From Podarcis erhardii (lineage: Eukaryota), in the NCBI GenBank assembly GCA_964252035.1, contig OZ176201.1: DNA of 64,000 bases; one strand, written 5' to 3'. Under the pieces are notes generated by a model. That model ran no database searches and was not told the DNA's origin. It worked only from the letters and a program-made list of their open reading frames with translations. This document shows, in pieces, positions 7,782 through 55,104 of the stretch; position 1 is the stretch's first letter; the number at the start of each line of letters is the position of its first letter. A program made the translations under genes and the position numbers.

Positions 7782-7956
7782 AGAGAGACTGAGAACACAC
7801 AGCATTGAATCATCAGGAAAATTGAAGATTTCCCCTGAACAACATTGGGATTTTACTGCGGAGGACTTGAAAGATCTTGGAGAAATTGGACGAGGCGCTT
7901 ATGGTTCTGTTAACAAAATGGTCCACAAACCAAGTGGGCAAATTATGGCTGTTAAA
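7782..7956 (+). CDS. MAP2K4: MAP2K4 coding exon 3 (175 nt; ERLRTHSIESSGKLKISPEQHWDFTAEDLKDLGEIGRGAYGSVNKMVHKPSGQIMAVK)
   Basis: ggcAG acceptor ending 7781, GTaggt donor at 7957; Gly-rich loop GRGAYG and VAIK-type lysine (MAVK); peptide matches MKK4. Confidence 0.98.
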
Positions 7957-19526: not shown

Positions 19527-19572
19527 CCTTACAAAGGACGAGTCCAAAAGGCCAAAGTATAAGGAGCTTCTG
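19527..19572 (+). CDS. MAP2K4: MAP2K4 coding exon 10 (46 nt; C-LTKDESKRPKYKELL)
   Basis: ttttAG acceptor, GTgagt donor at 19573. Confidence 0.97.
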
Positions 19573-28700: not shown

Positions 28701-29266
28701 TCACCACTGTTGTAAATGCAGGTCCATGGTACTGTTCAAGTTGAGATCACTAACATCTAAGAAATCAATGTTGAAGATGCTGGGCCCAGTGGTGGTGAGG
28801 GAACCGAAACCGTTGGCTGAGCTAGGCGGAGTGAGGTCCAGCCATTCCATTGTTTCCCAAGGAGACTCTGTGAAGCTCATGTGCAAACCAGTTCCTTCTC
28901 CAGAAGAGGGAGACAGCTGGGTCTCCATGGGCGACAGGGGAGTGGGCAGGATCTCGGGTGTCAGCAGTTCATCGGCAGCTTTGTTGGAAAATCCTTCCAT
29001 CACCCCTTCAAAGTGTGGTTCTTCACCCACTTTCAGTAGGGTGATTTCACTCGACCGCCCCAGAGGGCTGTGGGAATTTAACAAGATTTCCAGATGACTG
29101 TCGTTGCTGCTAGGGCAGTGTTCAAAGGACAGCTGACCTGAGGGGCCTTGCTCAAATGAAGCAGATGTCTTCAGTAGCGAGGAAGTGCCGGAGGTCCCCG
29201 AAGACATCGTTATCTGAGGCACCTTCTGAAGGCAAGGGCGGTCCTCTTTAGCATTTGCAGGCATTT
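28701..29266 (-). CDS. MYOCD: MYOCD last coding exon 14 (566 nt; transactivation domain, ...SPWETMEWLDLTPP...NSTMDLHLQQW*)
   Basis: aaacAG acceptor at 29268-29267, phase-1 G|AA ATG; TGA at 28703-28701; myocardin-specific C-terminus. Confidence 0.97.
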
Positions 29267-29792
29267 CTGTTTGCAAACAAAAAAGGCTCATCAAGAGCAG
29301 ATCTACAACTTTACTATGCCGTGCACCCCAAGCTACCCTACAACTTTAAATGTTATAAAACATCTTGCACATCAGTGATTACTGCCTGTCAAGACGGCAG
29401 ACTCCTTTGTCTACAGTATGAGATACCCAATGGAGCACATCGTAATTCGCTGTTGCTGTCAGAGAAGTGTGTCCTACTTTGCTTTTGGTTGGATATAGCT
29501 TTATGTGATGCTATGCTAGAGTAACTTGGCATACCAGGAATCTACTTTCTGGTTCTGTGAGCCTGTAAGGTGTAACTGGGAATGCCTGGGTGAGAAGAAC
29601 AGAAAGATCGCAGAAGAGCCAACAGCAGATTGTGGTAAGGGGAACACAGTAGGTGCTCCATCCAAGGACCGCAGGAAGGAAATCAGTAGAAGAAATTATC
29701 ACTAAGTATATGTGTGTTGGCAAGGACTTGTTAAGAGGGAAAAAGATGAGCGGATGAGTATGGGACGTCCTACAGCAACTAGAATCTTAATA

Positions 29793-32560: not shown

Positions 32561-32574
32561 AGTAGCTTTCTTAC

Positions 32575-33525
32575 TGGAGCTGTGCGAAGATGGCTGCTGG
32601 GCTGTGGAGAGCTGCTGCGTCCTTCTCCCTGAGTGCTGGGGGACACAGAGAGGAGGTAATGGCTGTTTGGTGAGGGTGGAAGGCTAATGTGTTGCGGACT
32701 CTTTGCTGCCTCTAGTGGAGAATGCTGGGGAGAGCACTGTGGGCTTAGGAATGTGGAGGACAGTATGCCGCTCTGTCCTGACGGTTCCATGCAATGGCTG
32801 TTTACAAGATGGGGCAGCTGAGGTGTCCCACAGTTTCTCAGTGTGTCCAAGTTGCTAGCCTGGCCTTTCAAGGGAGCTTGCTTAGAGGCAAAGGGACAAC
32901 TGGACGCTGGGTTTTCTTGCTTGATCGGAAAGCCGAAGAAGTGTGGAGAGGGCTGCTTCTCGTCCAAGCCGTGGCTCCTTTTGCGCTTCTGCAGCTGCAT
33001 CCTCAGCTCTTCCACTTGCCTCTGCTCTTGCTGCAGTTTCCAGGTCAGCTCATTGATGACCTTCTGCTTTTCCACCAGCATCTTGTCTTTCTCTGTGTCA
33101 ACCCTTTCCACGTCGGGCTGGATGCCAGCGCCGTTCATGCTTCCCATCAGGCTTTCTTCACACCCGCCTTGCACAGGGGAAGGGTGCAGGACAAAATGGG
33201 GGGAAGACATTGGTCCTTCGTTGAAACTGTCTGGCAAGGAGCCATTCACCGATAGGTCTGAGGAAGCTGGGGAGATGGGGGGAGTAGAGCTTGTGCTGCC
33301 AAAGTGGTAAAAGCCATTGGACAGCAGGCTGGCTGAAGACTGCGACTGGTAGCTGGAGAGAGAGTTGGTTGGTGTCACTGGGAAGGTGACGGTGGTTATC
33401 TCATTGAAGCTGGGCACAGAACCCCCGCTGCACTCCTGGAAGGGCCGCAGGCGTTCCATCAAGGCCGTTTTCGTACCTGATACAGGGAGGCCCCTTATTC
33501 GAAGCTGCTGCCTCAGCTCCGACAC
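32575..33525 (-). CDS. MYOCD: MYOCD exon 10 (951 nt; SAP domain C-terminal part, leucine zipper)
   Basis: ttccAG|GTG TCG GAG (VSELRQQLRIRGLPVSGTKTALMERLR); KDKMLVEKQKVINELTWKLQQEQRQVEELRMQL coiled coil; CCA|GTaaga donor. Confidence 0.98.
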
Positions 33526-33844
33526 CTGGAATGAAAGCCGTTTAGTCAGTGGCAAGGTCGCTTTTCAGTTCAACTTTGTGGCAAAGTAGCAACCTGCTTA
33601 CAGTGGACCCTGACCCAAATCTAAACCAGAGATTATTTGCACGGACAAAGAGTTGGGCTGGGTAAAGTTTGGGCTCCAAAATGGCTGCTATTAATTGGAC
33701 TGGATACGTCAGTTTGTCCCTGTGCTGCTTAGCACAACATTACTTGGAAATCTCTAATTATTTCTATTGCCTTAGGTGCTATGCTGTCCAAATTAAAATT
33801 ATGCAAGTTGTAATAAGCCTGGAGTGGGACTGAACGTCTGCACC

Positions 33845-40848: not shown

Positions 40849-42845
40849 CTGTGGCAGGAAGGAAGAAAAAGACTCAGTGATAGATGATTCTGAATGGCAG
40901 TAAGTTTTTAACAAGTGTACATGTAGCAAAGCAAACAAGTGATCTTAACACACTACAGTATTCACAGCTGTACACTTTCTTGTTCCTGTCAGGTAGGTAA
41001 AGCTGTGATTTATTTGTGCTCAAAGGCAAGTACCAAAGCAGCAAATTCAGTATGGTTGACAAACATTCAACTGAGAACTATTATAGAAAACCACTAATGA
41101 AGCAGTGGTTCGAGAACATGTAAATGGTGTGCTAATAAAATCTGAATTCAGCAATTGGTTCCACTGGCTCTGTTGAAGGTCCAGCTCCACCAGGCCTTTC
41201 TCCATCATCCTGGGAGCAGTCATCCCACCTGAGTGCATCAGACGGAGAGATGGGAAGCATAACTATTGAGAGGGACTAGCTCCTTGACTCCTCCCCCTGA
41301 ACTGTTTCCACACCTGCTGGCCCTTGTGAACATTTTGTAAGTTTAAGAACTGCTGCTTCAGCTTGCTTTCCCCCTCCTCACTCCATCCTTTCCTCCTTTT
41401 GAGTTCTGCATTTTAGATCAGAAGCCTGAGGGTTCCCATGTTTCTTAATTGCTCTATAAGCTGCTCTGGAATCATTTTCAGCTGCAGAACGGAATTACAA
41501 ATGCTTTAAATAAATAAATAATTCTCAAACATTGGTTACTGGAACTATCTGATTTCCCATGAGGTTCTGATTCTCCGTGGAACACACATTTTCAGGATTG
41601 TTACTATTTTACTGGGTTTTGTTTTTTAAAAAATGAGGATCTTCTTTCTTTTCAACTGTTTTTGAAGATGCTCATGATTTTGTTTGAGGCACTATATTAT
41701 ATGTGCCACAGCTTGCACCCATCAGTCTTCAGACCCTCCCCCCTGCAAGATAGCAGATCTTTAATAAATCCAGAACCTTCAAGGATAGCATCATTAGAAG
41801 GCTCTTGTTTTTATCCCAAAATTTCACAACTCTGCAGAATGCAACCGTTATCCCATTTCAAATTGCATCGTCTCTGTATTAGTTCAGATTATTTATTTAA
41901 AAATGCAAATTTGTTTTTAAATGCACATTTCAAAGTGGATGTGGCCAAAGTGTAAAAGTGGGCAAGGTCATTCTATTTTTAAAAAATATAGGGCACATTT
42001 TAAGAGTCTTGGAGGTTGGGGTTACAAAAAAACCCTTTTGACATTCTGGAGTCACAGCTGGGAATTTGTGGGAGTGGGGAAATAGGAGCAGTCAATTTTT
42101 TAAAAAGAGAATTGATGTGTGTGTGTGTGTGTCTTGGAAGCCCACAAAAAAAAATATTGGGGGGTCAAATGCTGCTTGTGCACCATGGTGAGAATACTCC
42201 AAGAAACTCATCAATAATGTGCCCCCAAACAATTCACCAAATCAATAGCTTGCATGGTTTTTTCATCCTACAACCTCCTTTGAGAAATGCTGCAAAGATG
42301 CGACCCATTTTGCTTCTCCGCGAATCAATGTGGCTTATGCCAGATGATGCTTCTCTGCCACTCAGCATACTCAGTGGGTTCTGGAAAGTGTTCCTGTGCA
42401 GTATCCCGCAAACTAGCAGGCAAAAGCGCTTGACCCTTGGCTTTTGCTGATAAGTAAAGTGCTGGGAAAGACAGGCTCTATCACAAAAGCCCCTGCAAGG
42501 CTGGAAGACAGAGAGTAGGCAGTGGAAGGAAGGAAGATTCCTGCTACACGCTGTAATCTTTCCAGGGACATGTCTGGCTTTGATCAAGTTTCTTCCTACT
42601 CTGCTAGTGAAGAGGGATTTGAAGAGGGCAGGAATGAAGGAACCATTCTAGGGTGCTAGAATCCTGCTAGCTCTTCAACATGGATCTGTACTCTCTTATG
42701 GGAATGATTCCAAAGGCATTCCCATGGAGAAAACATCAAGAACCCTCCATCACATTGCAAGGGACCCTCTCCACAGCGAGTCTTTTGTATAGCCTACTGT
42801 GCATGGATGTTGCTATAGCGCCAGAGGTGCCTTTCCTGGTATTAC

Positions 42846-43007
42846 CTTTGATGGCTTCTTTCACAGCTGAGTCAACAGGAATGATATTCTTCTCCACCAG
42901 CTCCAGAGGACCTGGCCGAAGAGCAATTTTCTCATTTAGATTGTCTGCAAGACGGGCTCTTTTCAGTTTCATCTGAGTAGCCTGGACAGACCCTTCTGTG
43001 GCTGAAT
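42846..43007 (-). CDS. MYOCD: MYOCD exon 5 (162 nt; RPEL3: D-SATEGSVQATQMKLKRARLADNLNEKIALRPGPLELVEKNIIPVDSAVKEAIK-G)
   Basis: ttacAG acceptor, G|GTaata donor; RPEL3 and KLKRAR basic NLS element. Confidence 0.98.
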
Positions 43008-43189
43008 CTGTAAAGCCAAATGGTAAAAATATAAATTATTCCACAAAATAACCAGCCTGTGCCACAGCTCCTTTCCTTTTATCACTTCTAAGAAACACAG
43101 GATAAATTCTATGTCAGTTCTTTCCCAGTAGTTAGAACCTGAGTGTAGCTATAACACAAAGCATTTCTCTTGAACCATAAAACAACTGT

Positions 43190-43530
43190 GGCTTGCCAAT
43201 CAGAAGGTCGGCAATTTGAATCCCCGCAATGGGACGAGCTCCTGTTGCTCTGTCCCAGCTCCTGCCAACCTAGCAGTTCGAAAGCACGCCAGTGCAAGTA
43301 GATAAATAGGTACCGCTCCAGTGGGAAGGTAAACAGCGTTTCTGTGCGCTGCTCTGGTTTCGGTGTTCTGTTGCGCCAGAAGCGGCTTAGTCATGCTGGC
43401 CACATGACCCAGAAAAAACTGTCTGCAGACGAACGCCGGCTCCCTTGGCCTGTAAAGCGAGATGAGCGCCGCAACCCCACAGTCGCCTGCAACTGGACTT
43501 AACTGTCAGGGGTCCTTTACCTTTACCTTT
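43190..43530 (+). mobile_element. Sauria-type SINE, slightly 5'-truncated
   Basis: High similarity to the 30303 copy; cctttacctttaccttt tail. Confidence 0.9.
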
Positions 43531-44919
43531 AACCACAACTAGCCACAGAGTGCAACGATGACAGGTGTGCTTGTAGATAAGCTTTTCTCACTGCTGATAC
43601 GATATGCAGTCAATTTTAACAATGCTCAAGATACACAGAAAGTATTACCTGTACATAGTTCCCTGTAGCCAAACAAAATAATTCCAAGGTTCTCACCCAG
43701 TGCACCACACCCTTTATGTGCGTCTGCATACCAGCATGGCTGAGCCACAGTTTGCTGGGGAGTGGGTAGCACACAAGCAAACAATCCTTCAAATGCAATG
43801 CTGGGCATGGAATCCTATGCAGGAAAGTCATTTCTGCAAGCCCAGTAAAAACTTGGTTTCAAGAGCTAAATGAGAATTGCAAGAAGCAGTATCTAAAAGA
43901 GGGAATAACTTGCTTCATGAGATGTGCATTTTCCCCCAGTTGTATAGTGTGTGCCATACATGCTAGAGCAGCAATTGCCCCAGCCAGGCTCAAATAAAAC
44001 CCACCCCAGATTTGTTTATAGAATAACATCATGCAAACATCATCATAAATCAGTTCGATGTTTATTCTTGTCCCCACCCTGAAGGAACCCAAGGTGGCAA
44101 ACTAACAAAGATTACAAACATTTTAGAAAAGTTTTAAAACCTAAAATAATTCATAAGCATTCCATAAGCAGGAGATTGCTACCAAGAAGGCCTAGATTAG
44201 GGCAATAAAAGGTGCTTTTATACCTTTCCTGAAGAGGGATCAAAAGACACTGAGGCTTACTCAGAACATGGCAGAAGTGTCTTCTGCTGTTGGCTTGCCA
44301 CAACTACAAGAAGTCCCAAACATCTAAGGCAATCTCCCACAACCTGGTGCCCTCTAGAGGATTTGGACTACAATTCCCATCAGTCCCAGACCACATCGTC
44401 AATGGTCAGGGATGATGGGAGTTGTCCAAAACCCTTGCGGAAGTCTAGACTATCTATTAACATAGAACAGCTCATTTGCAATTCGGTGGTGTATTTCTAT
44501 ACTTACAAACATGTAAAAAGAAACCTCAAGGTCGTGATCCCCATAAAATCATCAATAAAATACACTGCTAACAACAAAATTACACCAACAAATTAGTAAA
44601 TCAGAAATATACACTACTAAACTGGGTCACCCTTGAGTAAACAAATGTGTTTTAAGTAGGTACCGGAAATAGCAACACTATAGGTGCCTGCCTTACCAGG
44701 AGCTCATTCCAAAGGGCATGTGATGTAATACTGAAAGCCCTGGGTTTTTGCAGACATAAGATGAACGTCAGGAGTAAGCAGCACCTTTAAAAGTGTCTCC
44801 CCCAGGGATTGAAGTGACTGGGTAGGGATATACAAGATTAGGTGGTCCCAAAGATAATCTGGTTATTAAGGACTTTGTATGCTAATAGCAAGATCTTAAA
44901 CTTATTCATTCAATCTTAC

Positions 44920-44995
44920 CCTGTAAAATGTGCATATCAACCAGTTCTGAGCGCTCAGGTCTGTTTCGGGTCTTGTGCTTTAAATAATCTTCAGT
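44920..44995 (-). CDS. MYOCD: MYOCD exon 4 (76 nt; RPEL2: TEDYLKHKTRNRPERSELVDMHILQ-D)
   Basis: ctgtAG acceptor, G|GTaaga donor; MHILQ motif; ATG at 44935-44933 is equivalent to the short-isoform start. Confidence 0.97.
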
Positions 44996-45142
44996 CTACA
45001 GAACATAAGAACAGAGATCATTACCTCACTAGCTTGATTTAAAGTGCATTAGGCAATGCTTCTTTAAAAGGATTCAGTCAGACTTGGTCTAACTGACATT
45101 CATTTTAGTTAACATTTGTTCTTCTCTGGTAGGACCCACACC

Positions 45143-45312
45143 AAAAGATTCAAGTTACAGGAAAAGAGATTTCAGCTCAACATCGGGAATAATTTTCTGA
45201 TGGCAAGAGCTGTTTGACAGTGGAACCGACTAAGCAGAAGCCATCTGCATGCTTTAGTTGAGATTGCAGGGGTTGGACTAGATGACCCTCAGGATCCCTT
45301 CCAATTCGATAA
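45143..45312 (+). mobile_element. CR1 LINE 3' fragment
   Basis: aagagatttcagctcaacatcggga...ggggttggactagatgaccctcaggatcccttccaattc. Confidence 0.75.
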
Positions 45313-46397
45313 TTATCCCACAACTTTTTGTCTGTATACTGAATGTCTGTAGGCTAGGACTTGGATCTTTTAAGAGCTCCATTTGTGCAAACCCGAACTT
45401 TTGGCAGGTTTCCCAGAATGCAAGTAACTTATAATTGGCACAAAGGAATCATAATACTACACCAACTTTTAATATGCACTATATTCAGCACAATTTCAGT
45501 TTAGCTTACGGCACAGATCTTAAACAAGTGTAAAATTCAGCCCTAAGTACCCAGCTGTATCAAAGTAAATTTATTTACTTCACTAGAACTTATCTAACAG
45601 CAGCTCTGTTGTGTTTTAGCTAATAGGTATTTAAAACCCATCGCAATTAAATTGGTGTAGTTTCATGTTATGTGTGAACAAAGATTTTCAAGTAGGCTTC
45701 CCATCAGTCCCTCTCAACCAAACTAGCTGTGAAGTGTTCTGATATTGCTTCCCCCTGCCAGCCCCCAGGTCCCTCCCCAGCTGAATAAAGGCTTAGAATA
45801 TATTTTTGGTTCTATTTCTCCCTAAACGAATGTAGTTTAGGGCTTTTGACTCATATAATCCTTTTTTCTTCCAGGCAATCGGCCAGTAGAAGCCTTTGAA
45901 GGGAGACTGTGAGATATTAACCTATGCCTGAACACTGAAATATAGGGTACTTCTAAGATACTTCAGACTTCTTGAAGTGTTCCAAGCACATTTATTTTTC
46001 ACAGGGGGCTATACATCCTTCATTACGTTGGTCTTGAATTTTTGCAGGACACTCATATACAATAATGTAACATAGGCATCTTCTACATGTGTGCAGGTTT
46101 TTGATAAATGCCTATACATAAATTTCATCAAAAGTTTTGAAAGTAAGTTAATATATATGTACACAGAATTGTAGAGACTATAAAAGGATTCACTTGTTTG
46201 GCTTCCTGACCTAAATTTCCTCTACATATTAACTCCTATGCCATAAACAGAGGAAATAAAGGATAAGGTGCACCACAAGTTCCCATTAAATGGGACAAGT
46301 TAACAGACGGCAACTACTACTACTAATACAAATTCTGAGTAAATCAAGTCATAGTTTCCAGGACCTTCCAAAGTCACCATATACTATTGTCCATCTA

Positions 46398-48014
46398 TTC
46401 TTTTTTTTAATTATATTTATTAAAAAATTTCAAATCTAACAGAAAAGAAAAACATCCAAATTTAAGGCCTTATTTTCAATGTCATCTTTCCAGGACTTCC
46501 CCTCCCCTCCCCCTCTTGTATTCCAGTTCTTTCAAATAGATTCAGCAAATTCTTACCCCAAGTTTTAAAGTTATTATCATTAACCCAATTTAAAAAATAT
46601 TTTCCCATCCCCTAAAATCGACCTGTTCCCTTCCACGAGTTCCCCTCTTTAATATACAATACAGATTAACATAAAAAAATAGAAAAAAGAATAAAATGTA
46701 ATTTAACACCCTTTGGATTCCAAATTTCCCTCCCCCCTTTCCCGGTTGCGTTCCCAATGTCCGTCAATGTCTACTGTCGTCCTGGAGCTCCCACATCTAA
46801 GCCATAGTCCTTCACCAGTCTGCTTTGCCGTCTTTTTAATAGTCTTTGCCGTCTTTTGGTCATCTTTGATTTCGAATGTCCGATCTTGGAAGGGGTCTAT
46901 CTTCCAACTTTGTCCAGTTCTTGTTGTTCTTGTTGTTCTTGTTGTTCTCTCTTCTCCTCTCCCCCCCCCCCCGCTCTCCTGCACAAATGTTCTAATTCCG
47001 AAAAGCTTGTAATTCCTCTACAGAGGCTTTGTTATTCAGGAACAAAACATTACGTCAAGTCCCTTCCATTCTTCAATAGATAAATCTATTGTCTCCTTTA
47101 GTGTGTAGACCTCTGTAGACAAAATAGTGTTCCATTTCTGCAGTTTCCCAGGAGATAAAAAGTCCGATTCAAATTCCATGCCAGCAATACTTGTAATGAC
47201 CCACAGCTCCTCTAGAGGGATTATAATAACTCAGTTTCCTTCCCGATCACACCCACCAGTCAAAGTAACTTATTATTCCTTGTTTTAAACAGTTTATATC
47301 CAATTTATAACAAATGTAACCAGCAAAGTCCTCGTAACAAAGTTCTCTTTTTGTTCTTCAGTTTTGGCAGCTCCTTTGACAGCTGTCAAAACCTCTATTT
47401 CTCCTCTCCCGGCGCTCTCACGGATCGCTCCCGGGGTTTTTCGGGGGGGGGGTTGTATTTTAATCCACATTCCACTTTTCTCCTCCAGCCCAGCTTATAA
47501 TTTTCCATCGCGAAATTAATAACTTTATCAAAAAAAAAAAAGGTTGCACTCGATCTTAGTTGTCAGGTCCTTTGCTTTAGCTCTTCTACAACAGGGGGGA
47601 GGCTGACTTCCTTTTTGCACCTCCCCCGCTCGCTCCGAATTTAAGAAAAAAATTGTTCCCCTTTTTAATCCAAGTTCCAATTACTCACGGGTTATTCTTT
47701 TGAGTCCAGATTTTCAATGGAAGAAGTCAGCGCTCTCCACCAAATGGCATGCGGCTTCACTCGGCAGGGGAAGCGGAGGACTCACAGCACCCCCCCGTCA
47801 CCCGCTCCGTAGCCTTTAAAAAGGCTCCTTCGCGTGGTCGGGGGGGGGGCGCAAACGGTGCCCGCCGAGTCACCATGCCCATGGGTTTCAGCGCCCATGG
47901 TTTTTGAGGGTCCCCGCGTCGCCGGCGCGGTAGAACCCAGCCCCTGCCGAGCAGGCTCCCTCCGAAGCTCGGAGGGAGTCCGCCATTCGGCGATGGCGCC
48001 AACCCGGAAGTCTC
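46398..48014 (-). mobile_element. Non-autonomous L1-like retroposon, 1617 bp, in MYOCD intron 3
   Basis: Perfect 18-bp TSD tatactattgtccatcta (46380-46397 and 48015-48032); CpG-rich 5' end GACTTCCGG...ATGGCGG; AATAAA plus A-rich tail; no long ORF. Confidence 0.8.
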
Positions 48015-48711
48015 TATACTATTGTCCATCTAGCCCAGCATTGTCTATTGTAACTAGCAGCACATCTCCATATCTCTTTACCAATCTTGCTGCTGGTGTC
48101 ATTTAACTAGAAGTACCAAGGATTGGACCCGGGTCGTCATCCGTGCAAAATACCAGCTTTATGAATGAGCTATAGGCCTCTCTCTATATGGATTGTATTC
48201 TCTATATAAGAGAACTGCTATCAGTCTTGGAAAAGGCTTCTCTAAGCAGACTGAGTTCCCCAATTTCCCCCTTTGCCAAACTGCAAAATTCAGAGAAACA
48301 TGAATTTTGAAGGATGGCCTTGTTTAAGTTTGCGTATTATTTCTGAAATGGCAAATTAGGTAGGTTCGCCTTTAAATGTAAACAGAATCAAATTTCTGCC
48401 CTCCCCGCCCACGCTACACCTCTAGTAAGAGTCTTGGCTGGAGACTTGCAGCAGGGAAAGCTTGAGAATATCTTGTACTTTCTCTAAATAAGACCAGATC
48501 ACCAGCTCTTCCACTAGTGGGGTAGGTGGGGGGGAACTGCCTCTTAATCTTATCTTTCTCATTAGCTTTAATTAACAGTGCCTAAACTCTGCTTGATAAC
48601 TGGTGCCAGCAAGAGACAAGAGTACAGGTTAAGAACAGCCCAAAGGCACTCTGCAGTGTCACAAGAAGAGAAGGGCAATATGGTGTACTGCAGACATCAG
48701 GCACAAGGTTT

Positions 48712-48858
48712 NNNNNNNNNNNNNNNNNNNNNNNNNNNNNNNNNNNNNNNNNNNNNNNNNNNNNNNNNNNNNNNNNNNNNNNNNNNNNNNNNNNNNNNNN
48801 NNNNNNNNNNNNNNNNNNNNNNNNNNNNNNNNNNNNNNNNNNNNNNNNNNNNNNNNNN
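48712..48858. other. Assembly gap (147 N) in MYOCD intron 3
   Basis: Run of N. Confidence 0.99.
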
Positions 48859-49049
48859 CTCATGGGACATGTGCCAATTAAGTTTAGAGCCCTGTAAAGG
48901 TGTGCTAAAGGTATAGTAGTATCTGCAGAAATGAATCCAGTGATTTTCCAACATTCCACTCACATTCCTGCACATGGCCACAACCTTCTCAGCAGCTAGT
49001 TAACCTGCATGATCTCCAGCCACCCCCTCTGATGCCTACCCAGGGTTAC

Positions 49050-49105
49050 CTTGGCTCTCTCCAAGCTCTTCTTTTGCTCATGGAAGGGAGAGGCGTTTTT
49101 CAGCG
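49050..49105 (-). CDS. MYOCD: MYOCD exon 3 (56 nt; P-LKNASPFHEQKKSLERAK)
   Basis: ttgcAG acceptor, AAG|GTaacc donor; FHEQ motif; correct phase (1 to 0). Confidence 0.96.
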
Positions 49106-54348: not shown

Positions 54349-54490
54349 TGGGAGACCTGGATTCAGATCCTAGTTTGACCATGGACTCACTGGGTGGCCT
54401 TGGGCAAGGTGTTATCTCTCTCAGTCTCAGTTTCCCCATCTGCAAAAAATTGGAATAACAATGACCTGCCTCATAGGGTTTTGCAAGGTG
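54349..54490 (+). mobile_element. MIR/CORE-like SINE remnant
   Basis: ggagacctggattcagatcc...ccttgggcaag...tcagtttccccatctgcaaaa core. Confidence 0.65.
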
Positions 54491-55038: not shown

Positions 55039-55104
55039 GTGGCATGATTCCCTGGTTGGCGAGCTGCTCTCGGCTTCTTCGCTGCTGCAGCCGCAACTGT
55101 AAAA
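55039..55104 (-). CDS. MYOCD: MYOCD exon 2 (66 nt; RPEL1: V-LQLRLQQRRSREQLANQGIMP-P)
   Basis: tcccAG acceptor, C|GTgagt donor; exons 2-14 as listed sum to 2762 nt, which is in frame with a phase-1 exon 1. Confidence 0.97.

Follow-up and report, generated by a model that had tools for sequence, protein, structure and literature searches.

The myocardin gene (MYOCD) of a lacertid lizard was analyzed in a stretch of 64,000 nucleotides from Podarcis erhardii (GenBank assembly GCA_964252035.1, contig OZ176201.1; hereafter the window), where exons 3 and 4 of the MYOCD orthologue, lying on the minus strand, encode spacer 1 and the second RPEL motif (RPEL2) of the long isoform's N-terminal RPEL domain. 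Judged from the alignments, this domain represents the ancestral type of vertebrates and combines an MRTF-B-style RPEL1, an MRTF-A-like spacer 1, an RPEL2 with an RPxxxEL core, and a B2 element and RPEL3 that match those of MRTF-A over the aligned stretch. By the same comparison lacertids carry a change of their own, Ile122 to Thr, at a contact with the hydrophobic cleft of actin. The best overall explanation, which we favor on balance, is that of a lacertid MYOCD with an ancestral-type RPEL domain whose RPEL1-spacer-RPEL2 unit probably still binds G-actin. The general teaching is that myocardin, the founder of its family, is actin-independent and always in the nucleus, and that MRTF-A and MRTF-B are the G-actin sensors.

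The RPEL exons of the lizard gene

RPEL1, (V)LQLRLQQRRSREQLANQGIMP, with the core RRSREQL (RRxxxEL-type), is encoded by exon 2 (55039–55104, minus strand, as are all MYOCD exons below), which was placed by its AG/GT splice sites and frame and has 95% identity to residues 19–40 of Podarcis myocardin in tblastn. Exon 3 (49050–49105, 56 nt) encodes spacer 1, (P)LKNASPFHEQKKSLERAK, which aligns with spacer 1 of MAL in the PDB structures 2yjf and 3tpq. It is preceded by ...ttgcag, ends in ...GCC AAG|gtaacc and is entered in phase 1, its Pro codon consisting of the final C of exon 2 and CG. RPEL2, TEDYLKHKTRNRPERSELVDMHILQ, together with the first base of an Asp codon, is encoded by exon 4 (44920–44995, 76 nt), which is preceded by ...ctgtag and ends in CAG G|gtaaga. 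Exon 5 (42846–43007) contributes spacer 2, the B2 basic element (KLKRAR) of the nuclear localization signal (NLS) and RPEL3 (RPGPLEL; 31.1 bits on Pfam RPEL), with 100% identity to Podarcis residues 85–140. An AG acceptor and a GT donor flank all five MYOCD exons examined (2, a 49-nt alternative exon, 3, 4, and 5), and exons 2, 3, 4, and 5 join to a single open frame that runs through RPEL1, spacer 1 (PLKNASPFHEQKKSLERAK), RPEL2, B2, and RPEL3. The peptide that an earlier note on this DNA had read from exons 3 and 4 was exact, and the range given there is bounded by the 3′ end of exon 4 and the 5′ end of exon 3. Exon 1 (MTLL...) was not found in the window, where it was sought 5′ of exon 2 by motif search and tblastn.

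The spliced 44-mer of spacer 1 and RPEL2 aligns end-to-end with mouse MAL/MRTF-A in RPEL structures solved as actin or importin complexes (E = 6e-21; 31/44 residues identical), which confirms that spacer 1 is MRTF-like, as the earlier note had proposed. The full RPxxxEL core claimed there for RPEL2 is likewise present: the RPEL2 32-mer scores 28.6 bits (E = 1e-6) on the Pfam RPEL profile (PF02755) at a cutoff of 23, and the 44-mer scores 24 bits. In MAL, RPEL2 contacts actin by L118, K121, I122 (hydrophobic cleft), R125, P126, R128 (R-loop), L131, I136, and L137 (subdomain-3 ledge; PMC2583105). These contact residues were taken from that study and tabulated over 30 proteins. According to the alignment, the window RPEL2 keeps eight of the nine (L118, K121, R125, P126, R128, L131, I136, and L137), with Thr in place of Ile122. 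Exchange of Pro126 for Ala weakens actin binding by MAL RPEL2 16-fold, E130A has no effect, and the substitutions I122G and P126S in mouse myocardin were blamed by the authors for its weak actin binding (PMC2583105). RPEL1, VLQLRLQQRRSREQLANQGIM, holds the equivalents of L74, L78, R81, and R82 as well as the hydrophobic residues of helix 2, and its RRSREQL resembles the RRTREQL of MRTF-B, including the EQL ending. It scores 20.3 bits on Pfam RPEL, below the cutoff of 23, with 21 of its residues lying in the window.

Compared with mouse MAL/MRTF-A (PDB 2v52, 2yje, 2yjf, and 3tpq; PMC2583105), the lizard protein has the same three RPEL motifs at equal spacing, an identical B2 element (KLKRAR), and an RPEL3 that, as in MAL, has a weak RPGP-type core. 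Differences are found in RPEL1, which ends in EQL in the lizard but in EEL in MAL, and at the ERK-site Ser S98, which is Asn in the lizard, with an SP two residues on.

The proposed assignment of the gene to MYOCD rather than to the MRTFs was borne out by its identity to Podarcis myocardin, by phylogeny, and by linkage to MAP2K4. Residues 19–939 of Podarcis lilfordi myocardin were all located in the window at 94–100% identity per exon, exon 1 lying outside. The large MYOCD exon (32572–33531; 98% identity to Podarcis residues 375–694) encodes the SAP domain (Pfam SAP, 35.4 bits) and the leucine zipper NELTWKLQQEQRQVEEL; when it was used as a word-search query, every named match was a myocardin, the best being those of squamates (Gekko 86%, Phrynocephalus 87%). 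The last coding exon (28701–29294; 94% identity to residues 742–939) ends in DLHLQQW and a stop codon. The domain plan, with RPEL matches in exons 2, 4, and 5 (that in exon 2 under the cutoff) followed by SAP, zipper, and the DLHLQQW terminus, is collinear with MYOCD. For a maximum-likelihood tree of 27 family members the RPEL domain was cut from the references, and the window was represented by its large and last exons. In this RPEL-free tree the window pairs with Podarcis as its sister (support 99) within squamate (100), sauropsid (100), and tetrapod (95) MYOCD, and MRTF-A/B form a separate clade (99); the grouping with MRTF-A/B that would speak for the other identity did not occur. An exon covering the start of the MAP2K4 kinase domain lies at 7813–7956 on the plus strand and scores 96 bits to PDB MAP2K4 (3aln) versus 39.5 bits for MKK6. 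Thus the C-terminus DLHLQQW and the zipper NELTWKLQQEQ (both in open reading frames) as well as the MAP2K4 neighbor, on which the earlier note had based its assignment, are all present; the human MYOCD gene, too, lies near MAP2K4.

The gene, its exons, and the exact RPEL2 are already public in annotated lacertid myocardins. In the RefSeq/GenBank proteins of Podarcis muralis, P. raffonei, P. lilfordi, and Zootoca vivipara the RPEL2 exon is identical to that of the window. Spacer 1 reads KNASPF in the window but KNPSPF in the other four lacertids, and because of this one-residue difference the window represents another lacertid species.

RPEL2 across vertebrates

For the comparison with other vertebrates, the RPEL1-to-B2 segment was examined in the best 120 named MYOCD clusters from a word search with full-length caecilian myocardin. 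Birds, reptiles, amphibians, and placentals fill this list, and "mammalian" here means placental, because the sample contains neither monotremes nor marsupials. Within it, an RPEL2 of the actin-binding type is the usual non-mammalian state and is not special to the window, and the lacertid motif ranks with the less canonical ones. The arginine-proline core is common to birds, turtles, crocodilians, other squamates, most sampled amphibians, a cyprinid, and a shark. In birds RPEL2 is almost invariant (KHKIRSRPERSDL), has nine of the nine contacts and scores 35.7 bits, close to the canonical motifs of MRTF-A and MRTF-B (9/9 contacts; 35.6 and 35.7 bits). Turtles and crocodilians have RPEQSDL or RPQQSDL with 7–8 contacts (29.7–31.4 bits), and squamates other than lacertids have Ile122 with RPEHSEL, RPEQAEL, or RPAPSEL and 8/9 contacts (26.9–30.9 bits). 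Thr122 is fixed in five lacertids and recurs in one turtle. The motif of the caecilian and the salamanders, KHKMRNRPERS(D/E)L, has 7–8/9 contacts (28.0 bits in the caecilian); frogs mostly keep RP and have 6–8/9. Among fish, the cyprinid and shark motifs are canonical and Danio has RS; the fish scores are 32.9, 34.3, and 25.1 bits, with 8–9/9 contacts, Danio being untabulated. Outside mammals RPEL1 equals that of MRTF-B save one residue. The lizard RPEL2, put forward in the earlier note as a feature of this DNA, therefore does not stand out: it represents the general non-mammalian state, and the identical motif is found in public lacertid RefSeq proteins.

The divergence of mammalian RPEL2 that was claimed at the outset is confirmed in the 12 placentals: Ile122 is lost in all 12 (replaced by A, G, or V), Pro126 in 10 (S or C), and Tyr117 is lost as well. 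Their motifs read RNRSDRADL, RNRSNRADL, RNRCNSANL, RNRSYGAGL, RNKSERADL, and similar. The human string that the earlier note had quoted was compared with the macaque sequence, which is nearly the same. Pfam RPEL scores of placental RPEL2 range from no match (macaque) over 17.6 (elephant) to 20.0 bits (squirrel), compared with 35.7 bits in Passer; the value of one bat, 29.9 bits, lies outside this range. The placental spacer is LDSDK-like as opposed to LERAK outside placentals, and RPEL1 reads RRTQEQL instead of RRTREQL (Arg to Gln). Over the whole domain, Pfam RPEL gives 91.7 bits for a snake MRTF-A, 73.3 for sparrow (Passer) MYOCD, 65.2 for that of Podarcis muralis, and 36.9 for the macaque protein. 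Pro126 is kept in two bats only, Rhinolophus (RNRPDRADL, 29.9 bits) and Molossus (RSRPSRADS), in both at residues 57–88, by either retention or reversal. The placental and lizard genes are orthologues that share the exon plan, B2, RPEL3, and the Met within RPEL2 at which the smooth-muscle isoform begins.

The motif also shows independent departures outside mammals: RSRSEKSEL in Danio aesculapii (residues 35–66), KTRAEKPDL in the frog Discoglossus (RA in place of RP), and RPEKSDP with IM for IL in the frog Spea, whose 18.9 bits are under the cutoff. Canonical RPEL2 is therefore not universal in non-mammals. In addition, a myocardin-like model of the burbot Lota lota (967 aa) has RPEL1 followed by an acidic region, without spacer 1, RPEL2, and RPEL3, which is either a gap in the gene model or a real loss.

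Constraint was measured as mean pairwise identity of the RPEL2 exon versus the protein beyond the RPEL domain. RPEL2 is tighter than the protein average in birds (0.98 versus 0.90; 18 species), about average in crocodilians and turtles (0.94 versus 0.91), and somewhat less tight than average in squamates; in placentals it is clearly relaxed (0.74 versus 0.89; 12 species). The amphibian values are 0.69 and 0.71. This pattern would fit a function retained outside mammals and lost or changed within them, and the placental RPEL2 sequences are consistent with derived loss. The distribution likewise fits the loss on the mammalian side that the earlier note expected from a vertebrate comparison, with placentals as the mammals sampled and the RP core kept in most non-mammals. 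Bird and lizard myocardin share a canonical RPEL2 core and an MRTF-like spacer, but birds have nine of the nine contacts and the lizard eight. Because of these nine contacts, the score of 35.7 bits, and the near-invariance across orders, birds are the better test case for an actin-regulated myocardin.

Actin regulation and rival explanations

In the absence of actin the RPEL domain has no ordered structure. The MRTF-A complex has a stable core that consists of G-actin bound to the RPEL1-spacer-RPEL2 unit (PMC4963197). The B3/B2 NLS embedded in the RPEL domain is bound by importin alpha/beta in competition with G-actin (PMC2964165). Mammalian myocardin binds actin weakly and is nuclear (PMC2583105, PMC3941051, PMC3928398). 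By its sequence, the lizard RPEL1-spacer-RPEL2 unit would bind G-actin more strongly than that of mouse or human myocardin and more weakly than those of bird MYOCD or MRTF-A/B. Actin bound to the long isoform would, by analogy to the MRTFs, compete with importin for the embedded NLS. If the lizard unit does bind better than the mouse unit, actin would damp import or activity of this isoform. That the RPEL2 of lacertids has a measurably better affinity for actin than its counterpart in mouse myocardin is about as likely as not, and Rho/actin-dependent shuttling of the lizard long isoform we consider unlikely.

Several points weigh against actin regulation of the lizard protein. The earlier note called its RPEL2 intact, which holds for the RPxxxEL core but not for helix alpha1: Ile122 is one of two residues of this helix in the hydrophobic cleft of actin, the double mutant L118A+I122A abolishes actin binding (PMC2583105), and Thr122 removes one of these two cleft contacts. 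A comparator 32-mer with Ile for Thr scores 38.0 bits instead of 28.6; Thr122 thus costs 9.4 bits, and position 122 is accordingly among the most constrained of the RPEL family. Furthermore, position 128 varies between R, H, Q, and P in squamates, conservation of their RPEL2 exon lags behind that of the remaining protein (0.83 versus 0.89; four species), and the B3 element has fewer basic residues than its MRTF-A counterpart (KHKTRNR versus KRKIRSR). Together, the squamate values hint at a weaker constraint than on bird RPEL2 and make the squamate case the weaker one. The lizard MTLL isoform is also without the N-terminal extension that carries the nuclear export signal NES1 in MRTF-A (PMC4963197). 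Lastly, no work on RPEL conservation, actin binding, or localization of non-mammalian myocardin was found in the literature searched.

A rival explanation, which we regard as a real possibility but less likely than not, is that the lizard long isoform, like mammalian myocardin, does not depend on actin and is constitutively nuclear, with RPEL2 kept for the B3 half of the bipartite NLS, for ARP5 or other partners, or simply drifting slowly. Besides Thr122 with its profile penalty and the looser squamate RPEL2, it can draw on the position of the basic B3 element inside RPEL2 (PMC2964165) and on the binding of ARP5 by the RPEL motifs of mammalian myocardin independently of the conserved leucines (PMC3941051, PMC9900090). 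Moreover, one report ascribes the nuclear residence of mammalian myocardin also to import and export properties beyond RPEL1 and RPEL2 (PMC3928398). However, the eight retained actin contacts include Pro126 and Arg125, whose loss cripples RPEL2, and the conservation of RPEL motifs reflects actin binding almost wholly, according to the authors of the MAL RPEL2-actin structure (PMC2583105). Spacer 1 is likewise retained in an MRTF-like form, and the nine contacts of birds, near-invariant over 18 species, are hard to explain by an NLS alone.

Two further explanations concern the gene itself. It is hardly credible that it is an MRTF-A/B paralogue or acquired its RPEL exons by conversion from an MRTF gene; the sole point in favor is that spacer 1 and RPEL2 resemble those of MAL. 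The mapping of Podarcis myocardin over residues 19–939 and the RPEL-free tree, which places the window inside squamate MYOCD, led us to reject the paralogue; in addition, RPEL2 has residues of the MYOCD lineage (KHK, RNR, and LQD) that are shared with squamate and amphibian MYOCD and absent from MRTF-A, the same RPEL2 occurs in four other lacertids, and the gene is linked to MAP2K4. Very improbable, too, is a misjoin at an assembly gap that would have brought together exons of different transcripts. A gap of estimated length does lie between exons 3 and 4: the sole run of N in the window, at 48712–48858 inside intron 3, is non-coding and separated from the exon 3 donor by 192 nt and from the exon 4 acceptor by 3.7 kb. 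Since it sits in an intron and crosses no codon, the reading frame is untouched. Exons 3 and 4 have the same strand, the right order, and their own canonical splice sites between exons 2 and 5 of the same gene, and exon order and content match the complete myocardins found in five lacertid assemblies and in every other tetrapod examined. This artefact was rejected because of the splice sites and frame and because Podarcis residues 41–84 map consecutively onto the two exons with none lost.

Extending the preferred reading of an actin-binding unit beyond the lizard, we tentatively propose, as a possible though doubtful generalization, that outside mammals, and most clearly in birds, the long cardiac isoform of myocardin may still be a G-actin-regulated coactivator of SRF/MEF2. 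The actin-blind state would then be a specialization of placentals, or perhaps of all mammals, and lacertids with their Thr122 may be intermediate or independently weakening.

Isoforms, neighboring sequences, and significance

Lacertids and other lizards have several annotated RefSeq forms: the long MTLL form, an exon-2-skipped form, forms with an extra exon (MGKLRLREITPCPRPPT), and a short form that begins at the Met of MHIL; the same alternative N-termini occur in the annotated lacertid relatives of the window. Since these forms differ at the N-terminus, any actin regulation based on RPEL2 would be restricted to some isoforms. The Met of MHIL lies in exon 4, and the short isoform starting there is without RPEL1 and RPEL2, as is the mammalian smooth-muscle isoform (PMC3941051). 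The 49-nt alternative exon (54391–54439, minus strand), flanked by AG and GT, matched N-termini of RefSeq Podarcis and Zootoca isoforms in tblastn. Its inclusion in the MTLL frame leads to a frameshift and a stop in exon 3, as with the mammalian exon 2a. It also contains an ATG of its own in frame with exon 3 (MGKLRLREITPCPRPP-T-LKNASPF...), which would yield a protein that lacks RPEL1 and retains spacer 1, RPEL2, and RPEL3. A longer alternative N-terminus, MNGV..., is present in the annotated sauropsid MYOCD isoforms Podarcis raffonei X1, Hemicordylus X1, and Tyto alba X4; it ends in (E/S)(R/K)(K/R)NVLQLRLQQ and resembles the MRTF N-terminal extension before RPEL1. No exon for it was found in the window.

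Among the sequencing runs listed, none recorded as RNA contains the gene. Expression of the long isoform received no support from four RNA runs of a sister species over 42800–48700, in which coverage of exons 4 and 5 was zero or less than about 1, a result that says nothing either way on expression. RNA depth in this region was confined to dispersed repeats at about 43194–43587, 45164–45360, and 47725–48118. At these three intronic sites hundreds of reads were found, with 90–99% likeness and loose ends at fixed places; this depth comes from other copies of the repeats and not from MYOCD. The repeat with loose ends at 43236 looks like a tRNA-derived short interspersed element, because the loose ends include the tRNA-like box GGTTCGAATCC.

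MAP2K4 on the plus strand and MYOCD on the minus strand are convergent, with most of both genes within the 64 kb. As a by-product of the tblastn searches, a C-terminal MAP2K4-like stretch, KDESKRPKYKELL, was seen at about 19528–19572 (plus strand).

By itself the window adds little, since sister species already have the gene with its RPEL2 annotated and better representatives of the motif than that of the lizard exist. The textbook picture of myocardin rests on the mouse and human proteins. The sequence basis of actin independence, that is, the loss of Ile122 and Pro126, the altered spacer 1, and the Arg to Gln change in RPEL1, is confined to the sampled placentals. An MRTF-grade motif, under strong constraint in birds, is retained in sauropsids, most sampled amphibians, a cyprinid, and a shark. 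The broader hypothesis that non-mammalian myocardin still senses actin is reasonable and better examined with bird myocardin. If those proteins do bind actin, the control of cardiac genes by myocardin would be coupled to actin dynamics in most vertebrates, and the mammalian state would be a datable loss.

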